A stretch of 62,031 nt of DNA, filler included, from Syncephalis fuscata S228 (lineage: Eukaryota; Fungi; Zoopagomycota): assembly GCA_025786725.1 (NCBI GenBank). It is 3 parts of 3 records of this genome, joined end to end, with 100 filler letters (N's around TTAATTAATTAA, not from the genome) between each part and the next. Parts side by side here need not be neighbours in the genome. Positions count along the whole stretch, not along the records: positions 1 to 25,290 come from JAHLTZ010000121.1; 2 more parts are not named here. One strand, 5' to 3'. Positions 1-25,290 of the stretch are shown here, in pieces. The position numbers and the translations under genes were made by a program. Below the pieces are notes generated by a model, which saw only the letters and a program-made list of their open reading frames with translations, was not told the origin of the DNA and did no database searches. How positions within the stretch are numbered: the stretch's first letter is position 1; each line of letters begins with the position of its first letter.

Positions 1-258
1 GTGGCAGAACGGTGAATGTGGTGGCAGAACGGTGGACTGATGGTGGCAGAACGGTGAAATGGTGGTGGCAGAACGGTGGACTGATGGTGGCAGAACGGTG
101 AAATGGTGGCAGAACGGTGGACTGATGGTGGCAGAACGCTAAAATGGTGGTGGCAGAACGGTGGACTGGTGATGGCAGAACAGCGGTATTCCACCATCTC
201 ACCGTTTTGCCAGTTCACCGTCCTGCCACTACCATTCTGCCATTCCGCCATTCTGCCT
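1..258. repeat. 22-bp tandem repeat array, G-rich strand on + (partial, runs off window start)
   Basis: Units CAGAACGGTGAAATGGTGGTGG and CAGAACGGTGGACTGATGGTGG from 1 to ~180, then degenerate units in the opposite polarity at ~191-258. Reverse complement of the 14177-14433 part of the main array. Confidence 0.95.
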
Positions 259-3200
259 TGACAGTCTCTGACTATCGACTATCAGTCTACATTTAAAGCA
301 TTTGCCGTTTCTTTGAAGCTACAGGTAAGCATTGTTATGTTTTATTAAATATGTATTATTGTGCGGACAAAGACGGTGTAGCACAAATAGCCATGTACGC
401 TTTTATAATCGGCTGTTTACTATGGTAAGACAACTGGCGCTGCTATGTAATAAATACTTGCTTATTTTTACTTCAAACTACTTACCATTTAATCAACTGT
501 TATTTTTACATAGATATTTAGGTATGCAGTGTTAGTGTTGCTGTTTGCATTCATGCACTGTGTTTTGTTTTCAAATAATACTAGCTTTTAACAAGATCAC
601 AAGTCTTCTTCCTTGCCGTGTTATAATATGGAATAATATAGATTCAAATGAATGGTCAAATAAAGTGTAAAATAATGGCAATAAAGGTATAGTATGCGTA
701 TTGCACAAGCAATCAAGTAAAATATACAAACAATACGGCGAGTAACAAATAAACGAGTTTTATCAATAAGACATGATGAGTATAGTTTAGAATAGAATTA
801 ATGGATAAAATAATAGTGAAGATATACATAGACGATTAGGTAAGTACAATAAATTGAACCTATAGCAATAAAGCTAGCGGCAATAAAATACCTGCTGTAA
901 ATGGGTTGTGCTTATTATATGACGATCGATATATGACTTAATAAATACAGAATAGTAATGATATGGGTGGATAGAAGGCATATGCATACTAAATACTAAA
1001 TCTATAATGACGAGTATTTTAATGGCTAATGCCATCCACCACACAGTTTCATGCCCAATAGATTGGATGTTGTTAAATTTAGCCATTTATCTTTCAAATC
1101 ATACTAGATCATTAGCAAATTGTTTAATATTATTATACTAGGCTTAACACAATCAAACCAATCAAACGAACCACTATTGCTATTATTAAAATGACCAGTG
1201 TGGGTGTAGCTTTATAGAATGTAACTATTTTTAGTATACTAGCAGTATAGTACAATTCAAATAATTGAATGGCATAACAAAGCTACTAGACACTATACTA
1301 ATGTTGATTTATAGCATATTTATTTAGTTAAAGGATGCTAAATGTTAAAGCGTTTATAAAAAAGTAGCTGTATTTGCTACTACCTATAATCACGTTAGGC
1401 ATGGCATTACAATGGGAATCAGCACTATGATATAAGCATCATGTCAAATAGTTGACCTCCATATACACACACATTCAACGATACAAGAAGGCAACAGCAA
1501 TGGCAATGTATATCAGCGAGTATAAGTACGACAACCACCGCTCGTTATAGTTGCAATGTTGGTGGTAATATTCAACTGACATCAGCGGCGATCAATGTCA
1601 ATACACGCCAGCAAGCTGCACATATTAGCTACTGTATTAATAAGCAGTATAGTTAAGCAACATACAGCAGCATACAGCAGCATACAGCTGTTGAAACGCA
1701 TGTTAGTACGCATGCAACACCAGCGATTGATTCTATGCTATAATTACAAAATAAATAGTAGCGTCATTATGGTTGATTGTAATCAAAATACGTGCCGACG
1801 GCCAATATATATTAAATATTGTTAATATTTAATGCTAATATTGCCATTTCTATTTGTGGTGCCTTTTCACGATTTTTCCAACATATGTCAGTTATATGCG
1901 CCAATGCGTCAACGCCATGCGGTTATAGTAGATGCTATTACGTATTTCTAGCTGTATGATTGATAGAATCAAGAATTGGTAAAGTTAATTAATAAAGGCT
2001 ATAATAGTCCTTTTTTTGTTATTTTGACAATAAAAGCCCACACAAATACTAATTAAAAAATGTATCGATTGCTTAATAGATAGCCAATTGCAACTTGACA
2101 GTATCAATCCCTGTAGCCATAATTGACCGTTAACAATTGCCGTCGATTTGCTAGTTATGTCGGCCAACCAACAGCGTCGGTGACATGATATAATTAATAA
2201 ATATATTAATGATTGGTATTGCATATAGCTACAGTATGTGTGTAATAGCACAATAGCACGCAATGGTACACCGTTAGCCACACGTGCTGTGAACGGTATG
2301 CTAATCATGTACATTGGTTGTTTTATTAGCATTGGTGGTGGCGTGTATCAAGTATAACCGGCATCATTGGTAGATCATGTTATGTGGCATTGCCACTGGC
2401 AACTATACAGATGCTATCAGTCATCCGTAATAGTACTGACAATGTTAATGGCTGTGAATGTGTTATACAGACAATGGCGATTTTGGCTACATACCGTATA
2501 CAATTATGTAGTGGAGTGTATAACAATAACAGCCATTGGTATAGTATTGTCCATTGGTGCGCACACCATACTGTTGCTGGTATACAAAAGCAAATCTTAT
2601 GCATAGTCATCAGTTAGTAACAGTGCATATTATGCTGCCACTTGCTAAACGAGCAGACGTTAACTGTCCATGTTATTTGTAGATATGTTTCAAATTGGCA
2701 AGTACCAACACTAGGTTTACTACTTGTGTCGCCAATTACCCAGTAACAACTGGCATGACAATTCTCAATAGCCAGCATTAGTATACATGTTTATATTGAC
2801 GATCGGTAATCTTCAACAGTAATTTCAATTGTGGCATTTATTAAACACAGCTCACTACTGTCGTTGGCAATACAAATAGCAACTATTTTGCCAATTCCTA
2901 GTTGTTGCACTGCAATACATAGCATTGGTTTACAATGGTAGTAAGCTGTATAAATAGCGCTCACTAACTGTTAGTATCGGTAGCTATATCATGCCAATGA
3001 TGCACGCAGTATATTCAACACTAACTGTCGACCAGTAACCAGCAATACACAATAACAGATAGCACTAATGTAGCCATATGATTAACTGATACCCATGTTA
3101 CATGTCTATTAACCTATAGCCGGCTATGGAAATAATCAAATATCCATACTTTATCGGTGTTGACGCGCGATTACTAGCATATTGCTTAACAGAATATTGC

Positions 3201-6004
3201 TATACTATTATATTGGCTATTGTTAATCAGTTGATACAGCTAATCAGCAGGTATCCGTAAATACTATGCAACCAGCTAGTCGGTAAACAACATGGATTAA
3301 TAGCGTTTGGCCAGCTATATATATATATTGAAAACATGCATGGTGCTTAGTTGTCCATTTGCTAATAGCGCTTGCTATTAATTTCTACTATTTAGATAGA
3401 TATTAACAATACGATCTTGTCAATAGAATAATGCTAATTTCTATAGTAATCATGAGCAATATTACAATGTTGCCATTGCCAGCTAACTAATATAGCTGGC
3501 TATACGTTGATGGCAACAGTAATTTAATGTTTTCATGTTCACTACTGACCATTGACGGCTGCTTGATTGTTTATTAATGCTTATATATATATTATACAAT
3601 TATCCGTGTTAGTAATGTAGCTGTTTATATATTATAATCGACACATATTCATTATATAGCGCTCTGTAATAACGTTCATTGGCACTATTCCAGCGTCAAA
3701 ACTATTAACTTTGTCATAACATCGTTGAAACTTTAAATAGCTGTATTAGCTCAATATCGATCTGTACCAAAATAGTTGCATGTACATGCACAATAGTCTT
3801 TTTGTAATGCTCTATAGTCTGCAATACATTAATCGAATGATCTATGTCAAAGTATCACTATCATATCTATATGCTAAATATACTCATACATGTTTTGGTT
3901 ATTGCCAAGGTATGAGCCAATTTCACTGTCGACTCGTTTATTGCACCGTTTAATCAATTTACCCATCACATCGGCTTTAATACTAAGAAGCCGTCCCAAT
4001 CTTGTTGCCTTCTTTTGAATATGCTTAATTCAACGGAACATTTTACTTTGTTCTGTTTACTTACAAATCAACAACAGCTCATCAATACTACCAATTCCCA
4101 GTTGTAGACTGCCAATAAGCAGTGCAAATCCATCAGATATATCGTCGAAATTACATAATCGATTACGCCAGGTAGAACAACAACATAAGCGATCAGCTAC
4201 TGAATACAACGTAATATGCTGTGTGCATGTGACGCTAATCGATGATGAAATAAAATGATACCTTTACGCATCAATGCCACAAATACTGACATTGGTTCTA
4301 AATAATTAGCACTCTGTGTATTAGTATAGAATGAACGGAAACAGAATAGATCATAGCTACAAGGTAGCTAGCATTTCTTACGTGTATCCTCGAGCTTAAT
4401 AGCATCAGTCGTCAATGGATGTATACGGAATATCTAGTATTCAATGTACTTTAATTCTGATTAATTGTCTATTCTATATCATTCATTAACAAATGCACGT
4501 ATTTCTGAATCAGTGGATGTTATTGCATCCACTTGGAACAAAGCTTTGCGCAATAGATTGGCTGTCTAGTGTATATCCATTAATATTATGGCTTCATTTT
4601 TCGCAGAAGCAATGCAGCTTTTCAATAATGCTGTCGCCGCATATTTGAACTAATATCAACCGACATTGCTGAAGCAAAGCTGTTACACCGGTCAGCTGTA
4701 CTTAATAGCGCTAAATCAAATTCAACATCCTCCAGTCATAAATCCAATTTTCAGCGCTTGTATACAAATTTAATTGAGCAGTGCCGCGTATTGTATAGAA
4801 GTGGTCGCTGATCTAGCCGTTATTGGCATATTACGCCATAAATAAGCTGACAGTCTAAATTAACCACCAACAAAAGCTGTCGATTGAATAATCCTTGTAA
4901 CTTCAAAATAAACAAAACACGGATTTACCAGAATATACAATATACAATACAGTTTAATGATTTGTAGCGGCGTGTAGCAATAGCTGACGGCGTAATAAAA
5001 ACTCGACCCAATTAACAAGCATGTTTATATACCACAAAAGGCTATGTAGCCGCTGCAACAACTGTAGCTTGCTATTTACAAATATTCAACAGCATAGAAG
5101 AAAGCCATGCTGAATAGACTGAATGAAAGTAGACATGAACGACAAGCGGCAGATCTTACAACAAATAAAGCTACTAACAAGTGAACCACTGTAACAAACT
5201 GCGCACGTTTATTAGAAAACAAAGCACTACGCAATAAGACGAGTAGACACGCTAAAGTGTATAGACAGGAAAGTAACTGCTGCAGTGTATATGGACCAAT
5301 GAGAGATAAAAAAGGAATGAGCTGAGCTTTACAACCAATAGACCTAGCGCCAAATAAACAGCAGTTTTGAGTAGCGCATGGCTATCATATGACAGAACGA
5401 TACAGAATGAAACGAATATATAAAGTAAAAAGTATGAATAGCAGTGGTATAGCTACTAAGCATATATGCATGAGTGAATGAGCGACATTAGTCGACATTT
5501 ATAAATAATAAAGCTAGAACAGAAATAAACATATTTTTGGATAGAGCAAGGCTATACGAGTATAGAGTGATGTATAGAATGATAAATGTACGGTAAGAAA
5601 GCATGTAAAACGACATCAAAGCTATAGTGTATATAGCGCAATGAATGGAGAGAGAAAAGTGTATTGGGACAAACAGATGATAGAATGTACCTAGTATGTT
5701 ATAAAATGGTATATAGAGGTGTGGGATATAAAAGAATGGTATACGTGAATAGAGGATATATGCATACTGGATAATGAATCTATAATGATGAGTATTTTGA
5801 TGATAGACGTCACTCACCGCCCATCATCATGTTCAATAGACTGGATGTTATTAAAAATAGTCATTTGACCACCAAGCAAACAACAAATGCGATGATGTGA
5901 TAATTAAATAAAACTCACCATTTGTCCCTATCTTTAGTAGAATAGATGTCTAGTTCAGTTACGCGATTATTATTAAAAAGTCATTTAACACAAATTATAA
6001 TAAA
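1..6004. repeat. Left arm (A) of giant interrupted palindrome 1
   Basis: Reverse complement of ~8433-14433. Mirror ORF pairs 332..535/13899..14102 and 5488..5817/8620..8949 give coordinate sums 14434-14437. Near-identical up to ~5949, then about 5 mismatches to 6004, where homology ends. Confidence 0.97.
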
Positions 6005-6212
6005 GCTATAGCGCACTGAGTGGACTGAGTGAAGCTGATTGAAATGCATAATAAATATAAAGTGTTCAACCTGTCATTGACTAATAGTAGGATGTAAAGA
6101 TACAATTTTAATGATATTATTAGATTAAAAATATATGCATACTAAATAATAAATCTATGATGGCGGTATTTTGGACCCTGACGTCAGGTACTTTTAATTT
6201 CATGTTCACTAG
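5400..6212 (+). repeat. Copy of a dispersed AT-rich repeat family (core ATATGCATACTGGATAAT...CACTCACC...ATGTTCAATAG)
   Basis: Aligns by eye with ~22065-22892 (same strand) and ~15245-16075 (reverse). The ~110-bp core also occurs at ~979-1090, 8567-8682, 13345-13455, 18195-18312, 19826-19940, 24010-24120, 59166-59265 and 59431-59534. Confidence 0.85.
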
Positions 6213-6607
6213 AACGTGTGTGTAGGTCAGTTGCGCGAATACTATTAAATGTAGTCATCTAACACTAAATTGCAATTATCATTTAATTAAAAAACATTTT
6301 TTTTATAAACATTCAAATTATTCTGCCCACTTAACCGGCTTAGAAGTCAAAGAACACCAACTGTAAATATGCTGTACCCTTTATTATGTTTTGAGGTTTT
6401 AAAGCTGTCTTTATCTTCAATTAATCTCTAAAAATTTTAAAGTAATTATGGTTTTATAAGCTTAATATTTGCTAATTCGACGCATTTATAAAGTCGAATT
6501 TTAAACAAAAGCAATGCCATTTGCTAGTGCATAAACTATATTTTTGGAATAAAACTAGTATTTTTGTGAATAAAGAAACTAATCAAACAGTTATTCTTCT
6601 AAACATC

Positions 6608-8278
6608 ATGACCGCGAATAAATCACGTTGTCCAACGTGTGGAAAGGGTTTTCCGTCGTTAGCCAGCCGTAGGAAGCACGACTTTGAAGAACACAAGGCA
6701 CAAATAAACGTATGGAAAGGTGAAGGTAAGTAATGTAGCTTACGCTGAATAAATCAATCCACTTAACGATCTTCTACGACAGAACTACTTTTTGTTTGTA
6801 CTAAACAAGATGGGCGTTTTGGATGTCCGTTTAAAAATTGCACTGGCAGTTGCGCTACAACGGAAGGATTCAAAAAGCATCTAAAAAAGCACGAAGCTTA
6901 TATTACTTATTTCGAGATGGAAAACAAGGAAGCTCAAGTCGGAGCAAAACGACTTTATCAAGATGATAAAAAAGCGACAAGCTTTAAAAACAGTGATGAC
7001 GACGTATCACTGTTCACCAAAAAAAAGCAGAAGATTGGAAAGGAGCTATATTCTACTCCTACTCCTACTCATAGCACACCACTGGCGGATGCATCGCTTT
7101 CCTACGATGATGCAATTCTTAGTGCATTCAACGCGCTTCAAGCGTCGCCAAAATGCCAACAGAAGGCAAAACTAGTTGCAAAATCTAGCAAGTTACATCC
7201 TCTGTCGCTCACAACTGGAGATGGGCGTTCAACGTTTCACGTGCTGGCTGTCTCTGAAGCAATCTCACGGATTCTCTTTGCTCAGCCAAAAGGGGAAATT
7301 ATTGCACCACTGATTACACCCTCAGCAGCAGACAATGCCTGCCTTAATAGTAGCAAGACAGCTGACAACCGTTTACGTCATTGCTTGCAACATGGGCTGT
7401 TTGGTGAAAAACTGAAACAATGTGACATCATTGAAATGAACGATGAAATCGCCGAGCTATTACAAAGAGACTGGCATATTTGGCCACAAATGCGCTACGT
7501 ATCAGCGCAATTATTCAGCAATGCTATACTTGTTGAAGATAAGCAAATTCTACTGATCAACTGCGTGGAGGCGTACGGCCGCAGATGTACCATCGATGTA
7601 CATCATGAGACAGCGTGGCGTTCACCATCTGTGCCAGATGATGACGACCTTCGCTATAATGGAATTAAAGTTGTGGTGGACACATACAACAACTCAAAAA
7701 GACTGTTAATAGGAACGCATTCTTCAAATCTTCTTGTGACGTCGAGTGTCCTATTAAGAAATAATCAACAGATTATCCAGCTCGGGCCCAGTACAAAGGA
7801 CATTAGTCTAAAAGATCCACGGGTTTATTTGGACTCTAAAAGCATTGAAAAATCAATATGCCTTTTCAATAAGGGCAATAAATGTTGTCACATTGATTAT
7901 CTTGATTTCATGTCACAGTTACGCCAGGTTCGGTCGAAGTTCCATTGTCCTTCGACATACACACTTTGCCGCTCAAGCTCAGCGGCAACCAATTCTGTCA
8001 CTCGCCGCCCTTTTACCATTTGGACATTGGCGGACTATGAAATTTCTCGATTAACACAAGCAAAAATCGGATCGCAGTTGTTCCAAACAATTGCAACTGC
8101 TGTAATCAATAATGGGCGAAAGGCCAAGCTTCAAATGTCAGATGTGCAAAACATTGCAAACCAATGCAAAGAAGATAAAGTCTTGGTGTTCATAAAGCTT
8201 ATTCTTAAACAGTTCGACGGCCAAGATCATATTCAATTATCGGCAACAAGATATTGGACACACATCTGCAAGGCTTAG
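6608..8278 (+). CDS. C2H2 zinc-finger protein with large C-terminal domain of unknown function (2 exons: 6608-6725, 6783-8278)
   Basis: Exon 1 encodes CPTCGKGFPSLASRRKHDFEEH. The GTAAGT...TTAAC...CAG intron at 6726-6782 joins in frame to CPFKNCTGSCATTEGFKKHLKKH and the 453-aa ORF (537 aa in total). A probable lost T at ~8232 would extend the protein to 8355 (…DHISIIGNKILDTHLQGLANIVTGSLSDANKAVKKELSKIFQK*). Confidence 0.85.
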
Positions 8279-8432
8279 CAAACATTGTTACAGGAAGTTT
8301 AAGCGATGCAAACAAGGCGGTAAAGAAAGAACTGTCTAAAATATTTCAAAAATAATTAATGCAATGCTATCTTATTCAGCTGTCTTGTTTGTATTAAAGC
8401 TATCGCATTAACATTAAACGACTTATTGACCA

Positions 8433-11400
8433 TTTATTATAATTTGTGTTAAATGATTTTTTAATAATATTCGCGTAATTGGACTACACATCTATTCTAC
8501 TAAAGATAGGGACAAATGGTGAGTTTTATTTAATCATCACATCATCGCATTTGTTGTTTGCTTGGTGGTCAAATGACTATTTTTAATAACATCCAGTCTA
8601 TTGAACATGATGATGGGCGGTGAGTGACGTCTATCATCAAAATACTCATCATTATAGATTCATTATCCAGTATGCATATATCCTCTATTCACGTATACCA
8701 TTCTTTTATATCCCACACCTCTATATACCATTTTATAACATACTAGGTACATTCTATCATCTGTTTGTCCCAATACACTTTTCTCTCTCCATTCATTGCG
8801 CTATATACACTATAGCTTTGATGTCGTTTTACATGCTTTCTTACCGTACATTTATCATTCTATACATCACTCTATACTCGTATAGCCTTGCTCTATCCAA
8901 AAATATGTTTATTTCTGTTCTAGCTTTATTATTTATAAATGTCGACTAATGTCGCTCATTCACTCATGCATATATGCTTAGTAGCTATACCACTGCTATT
9001 CATACTTTTTACTTTATATATTCGTTTCATTCTGTATCGTTCTGTCATATGATAGCCATGCGCTACTCAAAACTGCTGTTTATTTGGCGCTAGGTCTATT
9101 GGTTGTAAAGCTCAGCTCATTCCTTTTTATCTCTCATTGGTCCATATACACTGCAGCAGTTACTTTCCTGTCTATACACTTTAGCGTGTCTACTCGTCTT
9201 ATTGCGTAGTGCTTTGTTTTCTAATAAACGTGCGCAGTTTGTTACAGTGGTTCACTTGTTAGTAGCTTTATTTGTTGTAAGATCTGCCGCTTGTCGTTCA
9301 TGTCTACTTTCATTCAGTCTATTTAGCATGGCTTCTTCTATGCTGTTGAATATTGTAAATAGCAAGCTACAGTTGTTGCAGCGGCTACATAGCCTTTTGT
9401 GGTATATAACATGCTTGTTAATTGGGTCGAGTTTTTATTACGCCGTCAGCTATTGCTACACGCCGCTACAAATCATTAAACTGTATTGTATATTGTATAT
9501 TCTGGTAAATCCGTGTTTTGTTTATTTTGAAGTTACAAGGATTATTCAATCGACAGCTTTTGTTGGTGGTTAATTTAGACTGCCAGCTTATTTATGGCGT
9601 AATATGCCAATAACGGCTAGATCAGCGACCACTTCTATACAATACGCGGCACTGCTCAATTAAATTTGTATACAAGCGCTGAAAATTGGATTTATGACTG
9701 GAGGATGTTGAATTTGATTTAGCGCTATTAAGTACAGCTGACCGGTGTAACAGCTTTGCTTCAGCAATGTCGGTTGATATTAGTTCAAATATGCGGCGAC
9801 AGCATTATTGAAAAGCTGCATTGCTTCTGCGAAAAATGAAGCCATAACATTAATGGATATACACTAGACAGCCAATCTATTGCGCAAAGCTTTGTTCCAA
9901 GTGGATGCAATAACATCCACTGATTCAGAAATACGTGCATTTGTTAATGAATGATATAGAATAGACAATTAATCAGAATTAAAGTACATTGAATACTAGA
10001 TATTCCGTATACATCCATTGACGACTGATGCTATTAAGCTCGAGGATACACGTAAGAAATGCTAGCTACCTTGTAGCTATGATCTATTCTGTTTCCGTTC
10101 ATTCTATACTAATACACAGAGTGCTAATTATTTAGAACCAATGTCAGTATTTGTGGCATTGATGCGTAAAGGTATCATTTTATTTCATCATCGATTAGCG
10201 TCACATGCACACAGCATATTACGTTGTATTCAGTAGCTGATCGCTTATGTTGTTGTTCTACCTGGCGTAATCGATTATGTAATTTCGACGATATATCTGA
10301 TGGATTTGCACTGCTTATTGGCAGTCTACAACTGGGAATTGGTAGTATTGATGAGCTGTTGTTGATTTGTAAGTAAACAGAACAAAGTAAAATGTTCCGT
10401 TGAATTAAGCATATTCAAAAGAAGGCAACAAGATTGGGACGGCTTCTTAGTATTAAAGCCGATGTGATGGGTAAATTGACTAAACGGTGCAATAAACGAG
10501 TCGACAGTGAAATTGGCCCATACCTTGGCAATAACCAAAACATGTATGAGTATATTTAGCATATAGATATGATAGTGATACTTTGACATAGATCATTCGA
10601 TTAATGTATTGCAGACTATAGAGCATTACAAAAAGACTATTGTGCATGTACATAGCAACTATTTTGGTACAGATCGATATTGAGCTAATACAGCTATTTA
10701 AAGTTTGCAACGATGTTATGACAAAGTTAATAGTTTTGACGCTGGAATAGTGCCAATGAACGTTATTACAGAGCGCTATATAATGAATATGTGTCGATTA
10801 TAATATATAAACAGCTACATTACTAACACGGATAATTGTATAATATATATATAAGCATTAATAAACAATCAAGCAGCCGTCAATGGTCAGTAGTGAACAT
10901 GAAAACATTAAATTACTGTTGCCATCAACGTATAGCCAGCTATATTAGTTAGCTGGCAATGGCAACATTGTAATATTGCTCATGATTACTATAGAAATTA
11001 GCATTATTCTATTGACAAGATCGTATTGTTAATATCTATCTAAATAGTAGAAATTAATAGCAAGCGCTATTAGCAAATGGACAACTAAGCACCATGCATG
11101 TTTTCAATATATATATATAGCTGGCCAAACGCTATTAATCCATGTTGTTTACCGACTAGCTGGTTGCATAGTATTTACGGATACCTGCTGATTAGCTGTA
11201 TCAACTGATTAACAATAGCCAATATAATAGTATAGCAATATTCTGTTAAGCAATATGCTAGTAATCGCGCGTCAACACCGATAAAGTATGGATATTTGAT
11301 TATTTCCATAGCCGGCTATAGGTTAATAGACATGTAACATGGGTATCAGTTAATTATATGGCTACATTAGTGCTATCTGTTATTGTGTATTGCTGGTTAC

Positions 11401-14400
11401 TGGTCGACAGTTAGTGTTGAATATACTGCGTGCATCATTGGCATGATATAGCTACCGATACTAACAGTTAGTGAGCGCTATTTATACAGCTTACTACCAT
11501 TGTAAACCAATGCTATGTATTGCAGTGCAACAACTAGGAATTGGCAAAATAGTTGCTATTTGTATTGCCACGACAGTAGTGAGCTGTGTTTAATAAATGC
11601 CACAATTGAAATTACTGTTGAAGATTACCGATCGTCAATATAAACATGTATACTAATGCTGGCTATTGAGAATTGCCATGCCAGTTGTTACTGGGTAATT
11701 GGCGACACAAGTAGTAAACCTAGTGTTGGTGCTTGCCAATTTGAAACATATCTACAAATAACATGGACAGTTAACGTCTGCTCGTTTAGCAAGTGGCAGC
11801 ATAATATGCACTGTTACTAACTGATGACTATGCATAAGATTTGCTTTTGTATACCGGCAACAGTATGGTGTGCGCACCAATGGACAATACTATACCAATG
11901 GCTGTTATTGTTATACACTCCACTACATAATTGTATACGGTATGTAGCCAAAATCGCCATTGTCTGTATAACACATTCACAGCCATTAACATTGTCAGTA
12001 CTATTACGGATGACTGATAGCATCTGTATAGTTGCCAGTGGCAATGCCGCATAACATGATCTACCAATGATGCCGGTTATACTTGATACACGCCACCACC
12101 AATGCTAATAAAACAACCAATGTACATGATTAGCATACCGTTCACAGCACGTGTGGCTAACGGTGTACCATTGCGTGCTATTGTGCTATTACACACATAC
12201 TGTAGCTATATGCAATACCAATCATTAATATATTTATTAATTATATCATGTCACCGACGCTGTTGGTTGGCCGACATAACTAGCAAATCGACAGCAATTG
12301 TTAACGGTCAATTATGGCTACAGGGATTGATACTGTCAAGTTGCAATTGGCTATCTATTAAGCAATCGATACATTTTTTAATTAGTATTTGTGTGGGCTT
12401 TTATTGTCAAAATAACAAAAAAAGGACTGTTATAGCCTTTATTAATTAACTTTACCAATTCTTGATTCTATCAATGATACAGCTAGAAATACGTAATAGC
12501 ATCTACTATAACCGCATGGCGTTGACGCATTGGCGCATATAACTGACATATGTTGGAAAAATCGTGAAAAGGCACCACAAATAGAAATGGCAATATTAGC
12601 ATTAAATATTAACAATATTTAATATATATTGGCCGTCGGCACGTATTTTGATTACAATCAACCATAATGACGCTACTATTTATTTTGTAATTATAGCATA
12701 GAATCAATCGCTGGTGTTGCATGCGTACTAACATGCGTTTCAACAGCTGTATGCTGCTGTATGCTGCTGTATGTTGCTTAACTATACTGCTTATTAATAC
12801 AGTAGCTAATATGTGCAGCTTGCTGGCGTGTATTGACATTGATCGCCGCTGATGTCAGTTGAATATTACCACCAACATTGCAACTATAACGAGCGGTGGT
12901 TGTCGTACTTATACTCGCTGATAGACATTGCCATTGCTGTTGCCTTCTTGTATCGTTGAATGTGTGTGTATATGGAGGTCAACTATTTGACATGATGCTT
13001 ATATCGTAATGCTGATTCCCATTGTAATGCCATGCCTAACCTGATTATAGGTAGTAGCAAATACAGTTACTTTTTTATAAACGCTTTAACATTTAGCATC
13101 CTTTAACTAAATAAATATGCTATAAATCAACATTAGTATAGTGTCTAGTAGCTTTGTTATGCCATTCAATTATTTGAATTGTACTATACTGCTAGTATAC
13201 TAAAAATAGTTACATTCTATAAAGCTACACCCACACTGGTCATTTTAATAATAGCAATAGTGGTTCGTTTGATTGGTTTGATTGTGTTAAGCCTAGTATA
13301 ATAATATTAAACAATTTGCTAATGATCTAGTATGATTTGAAAGATAAATGGCTAAATTTAACAACATCCAATCTATTGGGCATGAAACTGTGTGGTGGAT
13401 GGCATTAGCCATTAAAATACTCGTCATTATAGATTTAGTATTTAGTATGCATATGCCTTCTATCCACCCATATCATTACTATTCTGTATTTATTAAGTCA
13501 TATATCGATCGGTCATATAATAAGCACAACCCATTTACAGCAGGTATTTTATTGCCGCTAGCTTTATTGCTATAGGTTCAATTTATTGTACTTACCTAAT
13601 CGTCTATGTATATCTTCACTATTATTTTATCCATTAATTCTATTCTAAACTATACTCATCATGTCTTATTGATAAAACTCGTTTATTTGTTACTCGCCGT
13701 ATTGTTTGTATATTTTACTTGATTGCTTGTGCAATACGCATACTATACCTTTATTGCCATTATTTTACACTTTATTTGACCATTCATTTGAATCTATATT
13801 ATTCCATATTATAACACGGCAAGGAAGAAGCTTGTGATCTTGTTAAAAGCTAGTATTATTTGAAAACAAAACACAGTGCATGAATGCAAACAGCAACACT
13901 AACACTGCATACCTAAATATCTATGTAAAAATAACAGTTGATTAAATGGTAAGTAGTTTGAAGTAAAAATAAGCAAGTATTTATTACATAGCAGCGCCAG
14001 TTGTCTTACCATAGTAAACAGCCGATTATAAAAGCGTACATGGCTATTTGTGCTACACCGTCTTTGTCCGCACAATAATACATATTTAATAAAACATAAC
14101 AATGCTTACCTGTAGCTTCAAAGAAACGGCAAATGCTTTAAATGTAGACTGATAGTCGATAGTCAGAGACTGTCAAGGCAGAATGGCGGAATGGCAGAAT
14201 GGTAGTGGCAGGACGGTGAACTGGCAAAACGGTGAGATGGTGGAATACCGCTGTTCTGCCATCACCAGTCCACCGTTCTGCCACCACCATTTTAGCGTTC
14301 TGCCACCACCATTTCACCGTTCTGCCACCACCATTTCACCGTTCTGCCACCATCAGTCCACCGTTCTGCCACCACCATTTCACCGTTCTGCCACCATCAG

Positions 14401-14433
14401 TCCACCGTTCTGCCACCACCAGTCCACCGTTCT
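8433..14433. repeat. Right arm (A') of giant interrupted palindrome 1
   Basis: Reverse complement of 1-6004 with scattered substitutions and 1-bp indels. Confidence 0.97.
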
Positions 14434-15172
14434 GCCACCACCATTTCACCGTTCTGCCACCACCATTTCACCGTTCTGCCACCACCATTTCACCGTTCTG
14501 CCACCACCAGTCCACCGTTCTGCCACCACCATTTCACCGTTCTGCCACCATCAGTCCACCGTTCTGCCACCACCATTTCACCGTTCTGCCACCATCAGTC
14601 CACCGTTCTGCCACCACCATTTCACCGTTCTGCCACCATCAGTCCACCGTTCTGCCACCACCATTTCACCGTTCTGCCACCATCAGTCCACCGTTCTGCC
14701 ACCACCATTTCACCGTTCTGCCACCATCAGTCCACCGTTCTGCCACCACCATTTCACCGTTCTGCCACCATCAGTCCACCGTTCTGCCACCACCATTTCA
14801 CCGTTCTGCCACCATCAGTCCACCGTTCTGCCACCACCAGTCCACCGTTCTGCCACCATCAGTCCACCGTTCTGCCACCACCATCCACCGTTCTGCCACC
14901 ACCATTTCACCGTTCTGCCACCATCAGTCCACCGTTCTGCCACCACCATTTCACCGTTCTGCCACCATCAGTCCACCGTTCTGCCACCACCATTTCACCG
15001 TTCTGCCACCACCAGTCCACCGTTCTGCCACCACCATTTCACCGTTCTGCCATCACCAGTCCACCGTTCTGCCACACCATTTCACCGTTCTGCCACACCA
15101 TTTCACCGTTCTGCCACACCAGTCCACCGTTCTGCCACCACCATCACCATTTTGCCACCACCATTTTACCGT
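14177..15172. repeat. Minisatellite array of roughly 40 22-bp units, C-rich strand on +
   Basis: Units CCACCACCATTTCACCGTTCTG, CCACCATCAGTCCACCGTTCTG and CCACCACCAGTCCACCGTTCTG, often alternating as a 44-bp dimer. The first ~65 bp (14177-14243) are degenerate units in the opposite polarity. Confidence 0.97.
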
Positions 15173-18100
15173 TGAACAATTGAACGGTTGAACCGTCGGA
15201 CTCACTTCCACCACTTTTGACTCCACTCTCTTTTCATTCCTTTTAGTGAACATAAAATTAAAGTACCTGACATCTGGGTCCAAAATACCATCATCATAGA
15301 TTTATTATCCAGTATGCATATATTTTTAATCCAACAATATCATTAAGATGTATCTTTACATCCTACTCTTAGTCAATGACAGGTTGAACACTTATATTTA
15401 TTATGCATTTCAATCAGCTTCACTCAGTCCGCTCAGTGCGTTATAGCTTTATTATAGTTATTTTTATTATTAATAACTGTTTATTACAATTATTAACCAT
15501 TTAATGTGATTTGTGTCAAACGGCTACTTTTGATATTCGCGCAACTGGCCTGCACATTTGTTCTATTGAACATGGGGACGGGTGGTGAGTTTTATTAACG
15601 ATCAAATCATCACATTTGGTGTGATTTGGTGGTTAAATGGCTATTTTGATTATTTACGCGTTTGAACTAAACATTCAACCTATTGAACATGGAGCTGGGT
15701 GGTGAGCGACATCAAAGTTTAAAACACTTGTCATTATAGATTTATTATCCAGTATGCATATATCTCTATCTACCTACACCACTCCCTTTTATTCCGCACT
15801 TCTATGTATCATTCTACGACATACTGGACACATTCTGTTCATTAAGCACACCAGCACACTCTACTCATTCCCTCCTTGCGTTATATGCACTATAGTTTGA
15901 CATCGTTTTATATGTCATTTTACACTCGCCCATCTATGCTCAATCCAAAACTGGTTTTATTTTTGTTCTAGCGTTATTATTAACAACTGTCGACTAATGT
16001 CGCTCATTGATCATGCATATATGCTCAGTAGCTATACCACTGCTGTCCATACTTTTTACTTTGTATATTCGTTTTATTATCCAGTAAATACGCGCTAGCT
16101 ATTACCGTTGTCTGTTTGGTTCTAGCACCATTATTAGAAAAGTTCACGCAAGTTGCTTATCTGCTCATGCATATATGCTCGATAGCTTTAACAAAGCTAG
16201 TTGTCTTTTAACTAGCATAGCTGATAGCTGTTATGCTATTTTACCGTACAGTTACTATGCGCCATCAATAACTACTGTCAGCTTGACGCCAGCTTAATAT
16301 TGACAAGTTTGACTCGTTCCGCTTAGTCATTCCTTCCAAGGCGCACTATAGCTTTAATGCTGCTACTCACACAATTACTTTTGGTATTTTATTTGCTCCA
16401 TATTATTGTATGCTTAATGGCTATGCTTTATTTGCAGAAGCTATACGTTCCTTGTTAGCTGTTTGTTGCAAAGTTTAGCTCTGAGCACTTCTTTTACTCT
16501 TTGCACACAAACGCGCAAGTAGAATAGCCTTCTTACACTGCTAGTGCTCTTTTTGCTGTTTTCCAGTGCTGATATGTTGCAATGGTATCGAACGGGCCAG
16601 CGATGAACTGGTATAAGCTATTATACCAAATAAAGCTTGTTATTACAAAATAGATATTCGCTATGGGTGTTATGTATACGAGCTTTAAAAGTGTCGTATA
16701 GCTTATTGCAGGGTAATCATGTATTGCGCTATAGCTACTTGAGCACAAGGACAAAGTGTACGTATATTTACCATGTGGCCGTAGACAGTGCTGGCTACTC
16801 TATTCGACACAGTTAAAAGCAATAATAAACTTGGCCAAAAACAATTTGCTTTAAAGATTTTATTAGATGGATTGCATTAGTATTCAACATATAAGCCATT
16901 GGTATTTACTGTAGCTACAAGCTTGAAACTGGTCCCATTTAGCTGCTTTGCGTGCCGCCTAAATGATCGGCATTGTTTGAAATAAAGCCATAGCTGTATT
17001 GCCAAATAGACAGATTTACTTGCTATGCTACATGTAAAGTTTAGCATAGATCATTTTTACGCTTAGTCGGTTAAGCCGTGTAATCTAGATTTAATCCATC
17101 AGCTTATTGCGTTGTAAAGAGCTTACCAATATTAATGTTCAGACAATATAATGACAGTAATAAAGACTGTTTTGCAATAAGTGTACAAGAAAACACACGG
17201 TTTACTACATATTACACTAATAGTTACATGTACTGAAGATTCTACTGGAATGGTTGTAGCTGCTTATACGGAAGACTAAGAGCAATTGCGTAGTACATTG
17301 GTCATAGACGGTTTTAGACGACTCATGTTTTATTACGACATTTTCCACAACTATCACAATACATAAGCTGGCTTTACCGCTCCTCCGAACCAACACTGCA
17401 CCTTTATCTTCTCTTTCTACTCTTTACCACTCGATATACACTACACTCATTCGCCCTTACTGCCATTTGTTGTCCAATATGCTTTGCACTTGCTAGCCGT
17501 CTAATGATTACAAGATCACTGCTGGTTGCTGCTATATGTACTAAGGTCGGTAAACGGGCGTGGGAGGTGCGATGCAGTTGTGCCTTTTGGCTATGAAGCA
17601 CTGGATATGCAGTGTTCTAGAAGCTATATATCACGCAGTGTGTACCCCAGCATGCTGTAGAAGGCGCTTGTCTGCACATAGTTGATTGGTCTTTTGTATA
17701 GTAACATTGGTACGCTTACCGTGTGTTTGTTTGCGAGGTTGCCTTGCTGAGTATCTGGCTGTTGAGGCGACATAAGGTTTGCGCTTGAAGATATCTGATA
17801 TCTGATGGTGCAGAGCAAATGTTGTTTGGACAACCACTACTTATTGCGGTGTAGTCAAGCAGCAAACATCATTGGCACATGTGGCTCATCTCGTTTACTG
17901 ACCCTCTTCAATAGATATAGATTTAAGCGATATTTAGATTTGGCAAGAACAGGGCCACAATATGCTGTACAGTCATCCGGTTTGTACTAGTCTATCATTA
18001 TTTATGTATTTCTTGTTTAAATAAATAAATGTAGCATTTCTTATTTATTAACATACTACTATTAGTTGCGTTCATATAAATACAGACATCTTCCCATTTA

Positions 18101-18404
18101 ATAATAGTACTAGTTGTTTCTGCTATTGTTATTACACTGATAATAAACAACCTATTAAGCCATTGAATGTGCTTTGAAGGCAAACGATTAAATTTGATGC
18201 ATCCATGCAGTTGAGCTAGACAATTGCTCTGTTGAACATAATAACGAGTGGTGAGTGAATCAAAGTTTAAAATATTTATTGGCATAGATGTATTATCCAG
18301 TACGCTTATATCCAACATTTACTTGTATCATTCGTCTATTATCGCATACTATTATGTATTATTCTACAATACACTAGCCGCATTCTGGTTATTACATGCG
18401 GCAA
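15125..18404. repeat. Left arm (B) of giant interrupted palindrome 2
   Basis: Reverse complement of 19733-~23010. Mirror ORFs 16533..16754/21383..21604 give coordinate sum 38137. Near-identity ends at 18393/19744. Confidence 0.97.
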
Positions 18405-19732
18405 TATACTTTGCTCATTACGCTATATACACTGTTTGACACTGCTTTTATGTTTTTTACCGTACATTTGCTATTCTACATATCATTTTATTATCGTCCA
18501 TCCTTCATCTATCCAACCATATTTATTTTTGCACTAGCTTTATCATTAATAAAATTAAACTATTTTGCTCATGCACATCCACGCTGTTTAACCTTCTGGT
18601 AGACAAACCAGCTGTTGTCAATTAGCAATGGCTTTGGTGCTGATCAACGGAACAATGCGTATTCACAGCAATGGCAAGGCCAACCGGAAATGGTGCAATG
18701 GTTGGCTCACAGCTTTAAACCTTGGGTTTATCTCAACTTAGCTTTTGATGCTGTTATATATTCATATCAAAAAGTGGGACTGTTGGGAAGGTACTGAGCG
18801 ATATACAGTGTGGACTGAGGCCAACATAAGTGAAATGGAGCAAGTATGGTGTGCAGTGCACTATTACATAGACAAATACGTAGAAGCAACGCAGGGAAGC
18901 AAGTGATGCGTAAACTACGTAAAACTACGTAAAATAAACAAAATACAGTAGCTGAAATACAAGTAATGACCTGCGAGGACCATACTAAGCGGCCCTTAGC
19001 TGAAATGGCTACAGTGGCTACAGTGGCTGCACTAGAATAGGCTGAATTGATAGCTAATAGCCAATATACCATACACTGATCAATGCACTATCATAATAAA
19101 CAAACTACATCAGTAAATAAACAAATTTATCTGTATACTTATTATTTATACCAATATTTAACCAATATTACTCTGATATGCATGTACAATTCTGGATAAA
19201 ATACTAAGTATTTGCACATCTCATTTTATTGGCTTAGTATGGCCATAATTGTCGTTTGAGTAGGCAGAATCAATTGGACTGCAGTATATTTTTAGTTAAT
19301 TTACTGTTAATTTTCTAGTATGTCTAATTGTAACCGTGTAACATGGGCATTAGCAAAATGAGTGTAATAAGTGGCCAACTTTAAAGATAAAGCTAGGGTA
19401 AAATGGACAACGCCAATCGATGTAGTGTGGCCAATATACTGTATAACAATATATAACAACACTCTATAAATATAAAGTATATAATATCTATGTCAAATCT
19501 ACAGTACTAAAGCTACAGTGTACCAATATGGCCATTCAAGCGCCCGCACAAATGGTGTTAATGCTACAGCGCCTTTCCGATGCCAAAAGCGCTAAAACAT
19601 AAAAGAGCACTTATTTAATAATAGATCTGGAATCAAAACAACAATGGCGTTGCATAGCTCTTATGCGTTATACAATAAACAGCATACAATTTAGTGAATG
19701 TACAGCGTAATAGTTGGGATGAGTGAGGTGTG

Positions 19733-22700
19733 TTGCCGCATACAATAACCAGAATGCGGCTAGTGTATTGTAGAATAATACATAATAGTATGCGATAATA
19801 GACGAATGATACAAGTAAATGTTGGATATAAGCGTACTGGATAATACATCTATGCCAATAAATATTTTAAACTTTGATTCACTCACCGCTCGTTATTATG
19901 TTCAACAGAGCAATTGTCTAGCTCAACTGCATGGATGCATCAAATTTAATCGTTTGCCTTCAAAGCACATTCAATGGCTTAATAGGTTGTTTATTATCAG
20001 TGTAATAACAATAGCAGAAACAACTAGTACTATTATTAAATGGGAAGATGTCTGTATTTATATGAACGCAACTAATAGTAGTATGTTAATAAATAAGAAA
20101 TGCTACATTTATTTATTTAAACAAAGAAATACATAAATAATGATAGACTAGTACAAACCGGATGACTGTACAGCATATTGTGGCCCTGTTCTTGCCAAAT
20201 CTAAATATCGCTTAAATCTATATCTATTGAAGAGGGTCAGTAAACGAGATGAGCCACATGTGCCAATGATGTTTGCTGCTTGACTACACCGCAATAAGTA
20301 GTGGTTGTCCAAACAACATTTGCTCTGCACCATCAGATATCAGATATCTTCAAGCGCAAACCTTATGTCGCTCAACAGCCAGATACTCAGCAAGGCAACC
20401 TCGCAAACAAACACACGGTAAGCGTACCAATGTTACTATACAAAAGACCAATCAACTATGTGCAGACAAGCGCCTTCTACAGCATGCTGGAGTACACACT
20501 GCGTGATATATAGCTTCTAGAACACTGCATATCCAGTGCTTCATAGCCAAAAGGCACAACTGCATCGCACCTCCCACGCCCGTTTACCGACCTTAGTACA
20601 TATAGCAGCAACCAGCAGTGATCTTGTAATCATTAGACGGCTAGCAAGTGCAAAGCATATTGGACAACAAATGGCAGTAAGGGCGAATGAGTGTAGTGTA
20701 TATCGAGTGGTAAAGAGTAGAAAGAGAAGATAAAGGTGCAGTGTTGGTTCGGAGGAGCGGTAAAGCCAGCTTATGTATTGTGATAGTTGTGGAAAATGTC
20801 GTAATAAAACATGAGTCGTCTAAAACCGTCTATGACCAATGTACTACGCAATTGCTCTTAGTCTCCGTATAAGCAGCTACAACCATTCCAGTAGAATCTT
20901 CAGTACATGTAACTATTAGTGTAATATGTAGTAAACCGTGTGTTTTCTTGTACACTTATTGCAAAACAGTCTTTATTACTGTCATTATATTGTCTGAACA
21001 TTAATATTGGCAAGCTCTTTACAACGCAATAAGCTGATGGATTAAATCTAGATTACACGGCTTAACCGACTAAGCGTAAAAATGATCTATGCTAAACTTT
21101 ACATGTAGCATAGCAAGTAAATCTGTCTATTTGGCAATACCAGCTATGGCTTTATTTCAAACAATGCCGATCATTTAGGCGGCACGCAAAGCAGCTAAAT
21201 GGGACCAGTTTCAAGCTTGTAGCTACAGTAAATACCAATGGCTTATATGTTGAATACTAATGCAATCCATCTAATAAAATCTTTAAAGCAAATTGTTTTT
21301 GGCCAAGTTTATTATTGCTTTTAACTGTGTCGAATAGAGTAGCCAGCACTGTCTACGGCCACATGGTAAATATACGTACACTTTGTCCTTGTGCTCAAGT
21401 AGCTATAGCGCAATACATGATTACCCTGCAATAAGCTATACGACACTTTTAAAGCTCGTATACATAACACCCATAGCGAATATCTATTTTGTAATAACAA
21501 GCTTTATTTGGTATAATAGCTTATACCAGTTCATCGCTGGCCCGTTCGATACCATTGCAACATATCAGCACTGGAAAACAGCAAAAAGAGCACTAGCAGT
21601 GTAAGAAGGCTATTCTACTTGCGCGTTTGTGTGCAAAGAGTAAAAGAAGTGCTCAGAGCTAAACTTTGCAACAAACAGCTAACAAGGAACGTATAGCTTC
21701 TGCAAATAAAGCATAGCCATTAAGCATACAATAATATGGAGCAAATAAAATACCAAAAGTAATTGTGTGAGTAGCAGCATTAAAGCTATAGTGCGCCTTG
21801 AGAAGGAATGACTAAGCGGAACGAGTCAAACTTGTCAATATTAAGCTGGCGTCAAGCTGACAGTAGTTATTGATGGCGCATAGTAACTGTACGGTAAAAT
21901 AGCATAACAGCTATCAGCTATGCTAGTTAAAAGACAACTAGCTTTGTTAAAGCTATCGAGCATATATGCATGAGCAGATAAGCAACTTGCGTGAACTTTT
22001 CTAATAATGGTGCTAGAACCAAACAGACAACGGTAATAGCTAGCGCGTATTTACTGGATAATAAAACGAATATACAAAGTAAAAAGTATGGACAGCAGTG
22101 GTATAGCTACTGAGCATATATGCATGATCAATGAGCGACATTAGTCGACAGTTGTTAATAATAACGCTAGAACAAAAATAAAACCAGTTTTGGATTGAGC
22201 ATAGATGGGCGAGTGTAAAATGACATATAAAACGATGTCAAACTATAGTGCATATAACGCAAGGAGGAATGAGTAGAGTGTGCTGGTGTGCTTAATGAAC
22301 AGAATGTGTCCAGTATGTCGTAGAATGATACATAGAAGTGCGGAATAAAAGGGAGTGGTGTAGGTAGATAGAGATATATGCATACTGGATAATAAATCTA
22401 TAATGACAAGTGTTTTAAACTTTGATGTCGCTCACCACCCAGCTCCATGTTCAATAGGTTGAATGTTTAGTTCAAACGCGTAAATAATCAAAATAGCCAT
22501 TTAACCACCAAATCACACCAAATGTGATGATTTGATCGTTAATAAAACTCACCACCCGTCCCCATGTTCAATAGAACAAATGTGCAGGCCAGTTGCGCGA
22601 ATATCAAAAGTAGCCATTTGACACAAATCACATTAAATGGTTAATAATTGTAATAAACAGTTATTAATAATAAAAATAACTATAATAAAGCTATAACGCA

Positions 22701-23010
22701 CTGAGCGGACTGAGTGAAGCTGATTGAAATGCATAATAAATATAAGTGTTCAACCTGTCATTGACTAAGAGTAGGATGTAAAGATACATCTTAATGATAT
22801 TGTTGGATTAAAAATATATGCATACTGGATAATAAATCTATGATGATGGTATTTTGGACCCAGATGTCAGGTACTTTAATTTTATGTTCACTAAAAGGAA
22901 TGAAAAGAGAGTGGAGTCAAAAGTGGTGGAAGTGAGTCCGACGGTTCAACCGTTCAATTGTTCAACGGTAAAATGGTGGTGGCAAAATGGTGATGGTGGT
23001 GGCAGAACGG
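19733..23010. repeat. Right arm (B') of giant interrupted palindrome 2
   Basis: Reverse complement of 15125-18404, with a handful of substitutions (e.g. at ~15521, ~17125, ~17646, 18249) and 1-bp indels. Confidence 0.97.
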
Positions 23011-23172
23011 ATGGACGGTGTGGAGATGGCGTGGTGGTGCAGAACGGTGAAATGTGGTCGACATTGCAGAACGGTGATGGTGTGGCAGAACGGTGACTGG
23101 TGGTGCAGAACGGTGGACTGATTTGGCAGAACCGGTGAAATGGTCGGCAATATGTGGTGGCTGAACGGTGAC
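22966..23172. repeat. Short, garbled copy of the 22-bp array (G-rich strand on +)
   Basis: GGCAGAACGGTG-type units with many indels; appears collapsed or unpolished relative to 14177-15172. Confidence 0.85.
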
Positions 23173-23174
23173 AT

Positions 23175-25290
23175 CTCTGACTATCGAACGTATCAGTCTG
23201 AGCATGTAAAGCATGTGGTGCAAACGTTGACTTTTGGGATGCTACAGAAGCATGTATTCCACATCTCACGTTTTCCAGTTCACGTCTGCTATTCTCCATT
23301 CCTTCTCTTGCAGTCTCTGCTATCGACTTCAGCTACATTTAAAGCATTTCCGTTTTGAAGCTAGGTAGCTTGTTTGTTTTATTATATGTATTTTGTGCGG
23401 ACAAAGACGGTGTAGCACAAATAGCCATGTACGCTTTTATAATCGGCTGTTTTACTATGGTAAGACAACTGGCGCTGCTATGTAATAAATACTTGTTATT
23501 TTACTTCAAACTACTTACCATTTAATCAACTGTTATTTTTACATAGATATTTAGGTATGCAGTGTTAGTGTTGCTGTTTGCATTCATGCACTGTGTTTGT
23601 TTTCAAATAATACTAGCTTTTAACAAGATCACAAGCCTTCTTCCTTGCCGTGTTATAATATGGAATAATATAATTCAAATGAATGGTCAATAAGTGTAAA
23701 ATAATGGCAATAAAGGTATAGTATGCGTATTGCACAAGCAATCAAGTAAAATATACAAACAATACGGCGAGTAACAAATAAACGAGTTTTATCAATAAGA
23801 CATGATGAGTATAGTTTAGAATAGAATCAATGGATAAAATAATAGTGAAGATATACATAGACGATTAAGTAAGTACAATAAATTGAACCTATAGCAATAA
23901 AGCTAGCGGCAATAAAATACCTGCTGTAAATGGGTTGTGCTTATTATATGATCGATCGATATATGACTTAATAAATACAGAATAGTAATGATATGGGTGG
24001 ATAGAAGGCATATGCATACTAAATACTAAATCTATAATGACGAGTATTTTAATGGCTAATGCCATCCACCACACAGTTTCATGCCCAATAGATTGGATGT
24101 TGTTAAATTTAGCCATTTATCTTTCAAATCATACTAGATCATCAGCAAATTGTTTAATATTATTATACTAGGCTTAACACAATCAAACCAATCAAACGAA
24201 CCACTATTGCTATTATTAAAATGACCAGTGTGGGTGTAGCTTTATAGAATGTAACTATTTTTAGTATACTAGCAGTATAGTACAATTCAAATAATTGAAT
24301 GGCATAACAAAGCTACTAGACACTATACTAATGTTGATTTATAGCATATTTATTTAGTTAAAGGATGCTAAATGTTAAAGCGTTTATAAAAAAGTAGCTG
24401 TATTTGCTACTACCTATAATCAGGTTAGGCATGGCATTACAATGGGAATCAGCACTATGATATAAGCATCATGTCAAATAGTTGACCTCCATATACACAC
24501 ACATTCAACGATACAAGAAGGCAACAGCAATGGCAATGTATATAGCGAGTATAAGTACGACAACCACCGCTCGTTATAGTTGCAATGTTGGTGGTAATAT
24601 TCAACTGACATCAGCGGCGATCAATGTCAATACACGCCAGCAAGCTGCACATATTAGCTACTGTATTAATAAGCAGTATAGTTAAGCAACATACAGCAGC
24701 ATACAGCAGCATACAGCTGTTGAAACGCATGTTAGTACGCATGCAACACCAGCGATTGATTCTATGCTATAATTACAAAATAAATAGTAGCGTCATTATG
24801 GTTGATTGTAATCAAAATACGTGCCGACGGCCAATATATATTAAATATTGTTAATATTTAATGCTAATATTGCCATTTCTATTTGTGGTGCCTTTTCACG
24901 ATTTTTCCAACATATGTCAGTTATATGCGCCAATGCGTCAACGCCATGCGGTTATAGTAGATGCTATTACGTATTTCTAGCTGTATGATTGATAGAATCA
25001 AGAATTGGTAAAGTTAATTAATAAAGGCTATAATAGTCCTTTTTTTGTTATTTTGACAATAAAAGCCCACACAAATACTAATTAAAAAATGTATCGATTG
25101 CTTAATAGATAGCCAATTGCAACTTGACAGTATCAATCCCTGTAGCCATAATTGACCGTTAACAATTGCCGTCGATTTGCTAGTTATGTCGGCCAACCAA
25201 CAGCGTCGGTGACATGATATAATTAATAAATATATTAATGATTGGTATTGCATATAGCTACAGTATGTGTGTAATAGCACAATAGCACGC
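23175..25290. repeat. Third, direct copy (A'') of arm A, truncated by the gap
   Basis: Matches ~265-2261 on the same strand at offset ~23029 (ORF 1595..1825 = 24624..24854). Confidence 0.95.

Follow-up and report, generated by a model that had tools for sequence, protein, structure and literature searches.

Inverted duplications of several kinds have been described. In origin-dependent inverted-repeat amplification (ODIRA), the junctions form at short inverted repeats whose spacing ranges from a few to tens of base pairs, and the amplicon includes a replication origin; the Foldback elements of Drosophila have long inverted arms with tandem arrays of short repeats that vary in length; and the inverted-repeat centromeres of S. 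pombe, Candida tropicalis and Komagataella phaffii have gene-free cores that are unique to each chromosome. In the human Y and primate X palindromes, conversion between arms and rare inversion of the spacer are documented (PMC3723533, PMC8327919), and intrastrand fold-back or template switching and recombination between inverted repeats are established routes of palindrome formation (PMC4981268, PMC7999016). Here we compare with these systems a contig of the fungus Syncephalis fuscata S228 (Zoopagomycota; assembly GCA_025786725.1, record JAHLTZ010000121.1) that consists of two linked palindromes. This contig, denoted C26 (25,290 bp), is one of the 371 contigs of the 29.36-Mb assembly and is contained in its entirety, as positions 1-25290, in the analyzed window, a stretch of 62,031 nucleotides that joins parts of three records.

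C26 is probably one assembler path through a real, multi-copy cluster of chromosomal palindromes, that is, inverted segmental duplications that were seeded at copies of a dispersed repeat, E, and are maintained by gene conversion. The structural evidence comes from one long-read assembly, and the public sequencing runs of the species were used as Logan contigs.

Two palindromes linked by a 22-bp satellite

A repeat search and BLAST give the same order of segments for C26 (Table 1). A unit U (8433-18404) is flanked on both sides by its reverse complement U' (1-6004 and 19733-25290), and the copies are separated by the spacers S1 (6005-8432) and S2 (18405-19732), so that the contig reads U'-S1-U-S2-U' or, in smaller blocks, R-A-S1-A'-R'-B-S2-B'-R-a1, where U is A'+R'+B. 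Two palindromes alternate in this chain: P1 (A-S1-A') has 5.8-kb arms that are 99.3% alike, and P2 (B-S2-B') has 3.2-kb arms that are 98.8-99.6% alike. In the same searches, 1-6004 is the reverse complement of 14438-8433 at 99.3% over 6,012 columns, and 14989-18404 pairs in the same manner with 23144-19733 at 98.8%. For the pair 12173-14563 and 25290-22964 the identity is 94%, a low figure whose sole cause is the degradation and collapse of the array copy at 22964-23250. Between arms A and A' (5.8 kb) there are 24 substitutions together with 10 indel events; arms B and B' differ by six substitutions and seven one-base indels over 3.2 kb. Neither S1 (2,428 bp) nor S2 (1,328 bp) has a second copy inside C26. 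Arms of 3-6 kb at 99% identity cannot have originated by chance, and C26 is a large spacer-containing genomic palindrome as the term is defined: adjacent multi-kilobase inverted arms, at least 99% alike, around a spacer that is not duplicated.

The pattern recurs within the contig at an offset of 23029/23030, with 663-2261 directly repeated as 23692-25290. Between the first and the third arm there are five substitutions over 2 kb, mostly transitions, and at five informative sites of block a1 the three successive arms read TTTAG, TTCCG and CCTAG, the last of these being the pattern of two other contigs, C220 and C206. Because the patterns differ, a third copy, rather than the first arm encountered again, accounts for the 23-kb recurrence. 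The initial annotation, made from the sequence alone, had described the U'-S1-U-S2-U' layout, the flanking of U by its own reverse complement and the offset of ~23,029, and all of these are reproduced, the recurrence being a distinct third copy. Its comparison of the layout with an inverted triplication also stands, as does its view that the two palindromes are not independent; they are linked via the 22-bp array.

The central array (14253-15173 by Tandem Repeats Finder, TRF) comprises 42 units in 921 bp, with alternating unit variants that yield a 44-bp higher-order period; reverse-complement remnants are detected at 1-181 and 23066-23149. The array accounts for ~0.1-0.2 kb of U' against 0.92 kb of U, and U' is shorter than U. 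The 22-bp unit occurs 356 times in the genome, and all places among those listed are on contigs of this palindrome family. Arrays fully internal to contigs have at least seven lengths (0.31, 0.36, 0.36, 0.89, 0.93, 1.15, 1.33 and 1.83 kb). Compared with 1-230, the segment 22965-23253 has dozens of one-base deletions and resembles a raw read in quality. Contigs C313 and C99, like C26, start within array R. A telomeric role of the array was considered and rejected: it is internal, and at the contig starts its G-rich strand runs in the wrong direction. Two open reading frames (ORFs) of 319 and 330 aa in the array are repeat artefacts, and nothing in evidence favours the iteron-like role that was initially proposed for it.

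Two related satellite arrangements occur elsewhere in the assembly. On contig C89 (2991-3281), two diverged (86-88%) copies of arm A enclose 22-bp arrays in head-to-head orientation, which change strand at ~3100-3128; this site is an older palindrome centred on the satellite itself. In the variant found on C159, C225 and C237, a 16-bp satellite (unit TTGAACCGTTGAACAT) replaces the 22-bp array on either side of P2, at positions 445-911 and 8659-9134 of C159.

Copies on other contigs and junctions with unique DNA

Contig C313 (150,201 bp) opens with 25,139 bp in the order R-A-S1-A'-R'(0.93 kb)-B-S2-B'-R(1.15 kb)-a1(954 bp), followed by unique DNA, which is found elsewhere only on C267, with an identical junction. 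The reverse complement of C99, in which B'-R is followed by the full A and S1, lengthens the left end of the C313 chain by another B' arm. By virtue of the junction on C313 and C267, the structure is joined to ordinary chromosomal DNA, with at least three to four arms at the C313 locus, and would thus be embedded in the chromosome.

These contigs also bear on the alternative that retains the largest, if still small, share of our credence, namely that P1 and P2 are real but that the assembler took a wrong walk when it concatenated them in C26 with a third arm and a 23-kb periodicity. It would have entered P2 via one arm and left it on reads of the same side, and the accordion-like chain would then extend no further than C313. 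The join at 22964-23250 does have a raw-read-like sequence and a collapsed array, P2 with its flanks is resolvable only with reads longer than 12 kb, and variants of P2 outnumber those of P1, so that some copies of P2 must lack a following P1. Furthermore, C26, C220 and C206 all stop at the a1/a2 boundary (2261/2262), a common branch coordinate; C237 starts at 2262, and C159 ends nearby. The shared end at 2261 is therefore a branch of the repeat graph, where the assembler broke, and not a biological end. However, B'-R-a1 joins with well-formed arrays are present on five other contigs (C313, C220, C206, C216 and C304), and both the chain on the C99 reverse complement and the three arms on C313 itself speak against a wrong walk.

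Blocks of the palindrome family occur in other arrangements on ~20 contigs. S1 is present on five (C26, C217, C263, C99 and C313) and S2, in copies of 99-100% identity, on nine, and the arm/spacer junctions are identical on all the respective holders. An alternative palindrome, a2-X-B-S2-B'-X'-a2', is found on C159, C225 and C237, and single copies of U on C350, C82 and C123; P2 lies beside diverged sequence at the start of the large contig C304, and diverged members of the A family (86-88%) are on C89 and C320. The contexts on C350, C304 and C123 were read from match tables alone. Copies of arm B at 87-98% identity are found on many other contigs, and copies of S2 at 72-82%, some of them tandem, on many large ones. 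On the large contigs C35 (655802-659234), C168, C50 and C266, members of the family to which the right-hand 0.9 kb of S2 belongs are arranged in tandem, with a period of ~845 bp and ~81% identity.

The initial annotation had suggested that the unit could be self-contained and extrachromosomal. A ~23-kb inverted-dimer circle or linear palindromic episome with flip-flop isomers, of which C313 would be an integrated copy, is improbable, more so than a wrong walk. Such an episome would account for the self-overlap of C26 at an offset of 23,029, for seven small contigs as sub-paths of the circle, for the occurrence of S1 and S2 in both relative orientations and for the identity of S1 on five contigs; a weak hint of raised copy number is that noisy DNA runs assemble S1 and the arms although they yield only 4-5 Mb of the 29 Mb. 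Against it, the first and third arms at the two ends of C26 are different copies, and the end of the contig is a graph branch, that is, an assembler break. A single type of circle would have two arrays, whereas at least seven array lengths exist. On C313 and C267 the unit adjoins unique DNA and on C304 other sequence, its blocks are also found singly or in other palindromic arrangements elsewhere, and it contains no replication or partition gene, rRNA or tRNA.

Breakpoints at repeat E, putative conversion among copies and proposed origin

Repeat E (~0.8 kb) lies across the A/S1 boundary and has two full copies of 73% identity in the contig (15241-16078 and 22060-22896), and a relative at 69% across the B/S2 boundary (18228-18576). 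Fragments of it lie at 957-1088, 13346-13477 and 23987-24118, and a first look across the genome with the last 210 bp of E gives 234 candidates. At both A/S1 and B/S2, the E copy of the opposite arm is truncated exactly at the end of the palindrome, and a distance of 40 bp separates the fragment at 957-1088 from the site at which C313 switches from its third arm to unique DNA. Thus, all three breakpoints (6004/6005, 18404/18405 and position 1127 of a1) are within copies of E or at most 40 bp from them. Given that E copies make up about one eighth of the unit, such a coincidence has a chance of ~0.2-0.3% by a rough estimate and is unlikely to be accidental. As far as comparison of the assembled contigs goes, the layout, the anchoring in the chromosome, the multiplicity of copies and the position of the breakpoints at E can be considered demonstrated.

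The differences between arms are mainly transitions. Six of the 24 substitutions between the A arms fall within the last 100 bp beside S1, and arm identity drops in the last 40-100 bp at both boundaries. There are 29 informative sites among nine copies of A and 24 among sixteen copies of B, with mosaic patterns, and S2 has at least four variant patterns. In S1, no substitution is common to two contigs, and the five copies differ almost only by homopolymer indels. The combination of mosaic arms with a non-mosaic S1 is expected from conversion among many arm copies and would fit continuing gene conversion together with a very recent duplication of P1. On C99, C263 and C313, one-base homopolymer indels relative to C26 break the reading frame in S1; the assembly therefore keeps indel errors of the long reads, and apparent gene frameshifts are not to be trusted.

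We infer the following course of events. An inverted duplication could have arisen at E copies, either by fold-back or template switching after a break or by recombination between inverted copies of E. The arms would then have been held more than 99% alike through conversion between arms and between copies, and crossing-over between arms would be able to flip the spacers. The initial annotation had proposed looking for both spacer orientations, and both relative orientations are seen among the contigs: S2 of C313 runs opposite to that of C26, and C313 and C304 do not agree in how S2 is oriented toward the outer flank. These orientations are compatible with spacer flipping, with different loci or a choice of the assembler being equally possible explanations. 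The region is probably heterochromatic, of subtelomeric or pericentromeric type, since it is gene-poor, built of repeats and disruptive to assembly.

Spread by transposition of a foldback-type element whose inverted arms are very long, and which would consist of P2 and its flanking arrays, perhaps also P1, seems somewhat less probable still than an episome. P2 is indeed found in at least five contexts, has on either side satellite arrays that are inverted and vary in length, and encodes no protein. However, defined element ends or target-site duplications were not found, the palindrome of the C159 type extends past P2 into other blocks, and the neighbouring blocks are common to several loci, which fits segmental duplication better.

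The assembly contains no canonical TTAGGG arrays: (TTAGGG)4 is found nowhere, and (TTAGGG)3 with two mismatches has one match, at chance level. The telomere repeat of S. fuscata is either non-canonical or not assembled. One can conceive of an inverted-dimer episome of 23 kb, or of a linear form with hairpin ends, from which break-induced, rolling replication would add copies to the ends of broken chromosomes and so generate terminal accordions of alternating palindromes that help to cap the chromosomes. As part of such a self-propagating amplicon, the zinc-finger protein encoded in S1 (see below) may bind the 22-bp array. This scenario is speculative, and we regard it as slightly less plausible than transposition.

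The k-mer depth in two DNA runs is ~10-13 for the arm against ~5-6 for S1, the ratio of ~2:1 that a palindrome predicts. Although multiple displacement amplification (MDA) fold-back chimeras and missed PacBio hairpin adapters do yield inverted duplications, and the assembly derives from noisy long reads, an artefact of library construction or of whole-genome amplification, the latter raised as a real alternative in the initial annotation, is very improbable, because the junctions of such artefacts are random, variable and spacerless, whereas here fixed spacers of 2.4 and 1.3 kb have identical junctions on five and nine contigs, the arms differ by transitions, and the arm-to-spacer depth is ~2:1 in both runs. 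A further run, X6, has 33 Mb of contigs and bears the label of the same species; the element seemed to be lacking from it (4500-9900), but this absence is meaningless because X6 is bisulfite-converted: every C reads T in loose ends, CpG included. The converted CpGs hint that the dispersed repeat is unmethylated in X6.

Several considerations weigh against the reading of C26 as a path through a cluster of chromosomal palindromes. Among the Logan contigs listed, none bridges an arm/spacer junction of this exact copy. All contigs come from a single assembly, so that the junctions they share are not fully independent support, and homopolymer indel errors remain in it. Establishing the orientation of S1 relative to S2 requires reads longer than 11 kb, and the "flipped" spacers could be choices of the assembler. 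Mixing of copies in the repeat consensus could mimic conversion mosaics and inflate the number of variant patterns. Finally, the telomere search does not fix the chromosomal position.

Gene content and comparison with known palindromes

At the centre of P1 lies the sole functional cargo of the palindromes, a predicted C2H2 zinc-finger gene. The gene model, derived by tblastn with the S. fuscata protein P0001 and the Mucor protein P0002, has a first exon at ~6608-6724, an intron of ~84 bp (~6725-6808) and a second exon that extends to the stop at 8278. The only long ORF of C26 (6917-8278) is 100% identical to an NCBI Syncephalis fuscata protein. Two C2H2 finger motifs (C-x2-C ... H-x3-5-H) are visible at the N-terminus of P0001; the Pfam C2H2 matches in the S1 gene and its homologs are weak (15-25 bits, under the gathering score). 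For the conserved C-terminal ~450 aa, a Pfam search retrieves no family; the feature search of the ESM Atlas with the S1 protein gives scores below 0.9, and its AlphaFold model (pLDDT, the model confidence score, 57) has no match in the PDB at E<=0.001 with Foldseek. The reading frame is intact on C26 and C217. Contigs of run X1, whose RNA label is a guess, cover 6711-8280 with a depth that climbs toward the 3' end (~3 to 36), which suggests that the gene is transcribed.

All named homologs of the S1 protein, at 31-39% identity, are from Mucorales, the hosts of Syncephalis, which is a zoopagomycete mycoparasite. Horizontal transfer from a Mucorales host was considered for this reason and dropped: an intact paralog on C35 (469176-470327) is equally distant (35% identity). 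A decayed copy on C304 (90438-91678) is a pseudogene with many stops.

The zinc-finger gene was named in the initial annotation as the only clear gene, and with its two C2H2 fingers it is the only one detected. Pfam searches of 17 window ORFs of at least 70 aa (the finger ORF of S1, one ORF of the array and 15 from S2 and the arms) return only weak finger matches, and no long terminal repeats (LTRs) or terminal inverted repeats (TIRs) were found inside U. Rfam and tRNA scans of the whole of C26 give no match, which rules out an organelle genome as well as a palindrome of rDNA. For large parts of A, B and S2 there are copies of 70-93% identity on many large contigs, and all of the unit except the S1 gene therefore consists of dispersed or satellite repeats.

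Table 1. Features of contig C26, with window positions, strand and basis of assignment.
Feature	Position	Strand	Basis
Array R (G-rich strand), 22-bp units, cut by contig start	1-181	+	TRF
Arm A, left of P1; a1 = 182-2261, a2 = 2262-6004	182-6004	+	99.3% reverse complement of 8433-14256
Dispersed repeat E, across A/S1 boundary	5406-6214	+	Sequence comparison
Spacer S1, single copy in C26	6005-8432	+	
C2H2 zinc-finger gene, ~528 aa, inside S1	6608-8278	+	tblastn
Arm A', right of P1, first part of U	8433-14252	-	Repeat search, BLAST
Array R' (C-rich strand), 42 units of 22 bp	14253-15173	+	TRF
Arm B, left of P2, last part of U	15174-18404	+	Reverse complement of 19733-22964
Spacer S2, dispersed or satellite-type repeat	18405-19732	+	
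Arm B', right of P2	19733-22964	-	Repeat search, BLAST
Array R, collapsed low-quality copy	22965-23253	+	TRF detects 23066-23149 only
a1, third copy, ending at branch point	23254-25290	+	

Large palindromes with nearly identical arms resist assembly, and descriptions of them from organisms other than animals and model yeasts are rare. The present locus is a documented case from Zoopagomycota, with breakpoints at one dispersed repeat, a variable satellite link and an intact gene at the centre of a palindrome, and offers a concrete site for studying the origin and homogenisation of inverted duplications in early-diverging fungi. It also reduces ~20 redundant small contigs of the assembly to one unresolved repeat cluster. 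On present evidence, it does not reveal a new kind of replicon.

Among the systems considered, plastid inverted-repeat genomes and the 2-micron plasmid share with C26 the alternation of inverted repeats and spacers; both spacer orientations occur in them and may do so here. Unlike them, C26 is joined to chromosomal DNA and has no replication or recombinase gene, and it does not close into a circle: the arms at its ends differ in pattern, the arrays at its ends differ in length, and one end is a graph branch. Foldback elements resemble it in having long inverted arms that include variable tandem arrays; in C26, however, the arms are largely non-satellite, and no termini or target-site duplications were found. 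The inverted-repeat centromeres recall C26 in having a core of a few kilobases between inverted repeats of a few kilobases; their repeats are homogenised between loci and their centre can flip, as is proposed here, but S1 contains an intact gene and is identical on five contigs.

An ODIRA triplication, the model invoked in the initial annotation, resembles C26 in having three copies with the middle one inverted and two different junctions. The short-inverted-repeat junctions of that model, with loops of at most ~100 bp, are not seen here; the loops are the 1.3- and 2.4-kb spacers. Nor are the copies equal, as the third arm beside unique DNA on C313 is only 954 bp long. Similar in origin may be the yeast palindromes that follow telomere loss or hairpin-capped breaks (PMC4981268; PMC7999016), which start at pre-existing inverted repeats, as is proposed here, and likewise form large inverted duplications near the end of a chromosome or, in the case of C26, of a contig. 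The yeast cases are laboratory mutants, whereas C26 is a stable wild-type feature with several copies and a putative terminal position.

The ampliconic palindromes of sex chromosomes (P1-P8 of the human Y and those of the primate X) share several features with C26: arms more than 99% alike around a unique spacer, an associated gene and recent multiple copies, to which conversion between arms and occasional inversion of the spacer, both putative in C26, may be added. The arms of C26 are 3-6 kb long compared with 10 kb to 1.4 Mb in the sex chromosomes, and the gene is located in the spacer rather than in the arms. C26 also differs in that its arms consist of dispersed repeats, its two palindromes alternate through a satellite, and its host is an early-diverging fungus. 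C26 thus belongs among the large genomic palindromes and inverted segmental duplications, and what is unusual about it is the alternation of two palindromes through a satellite.

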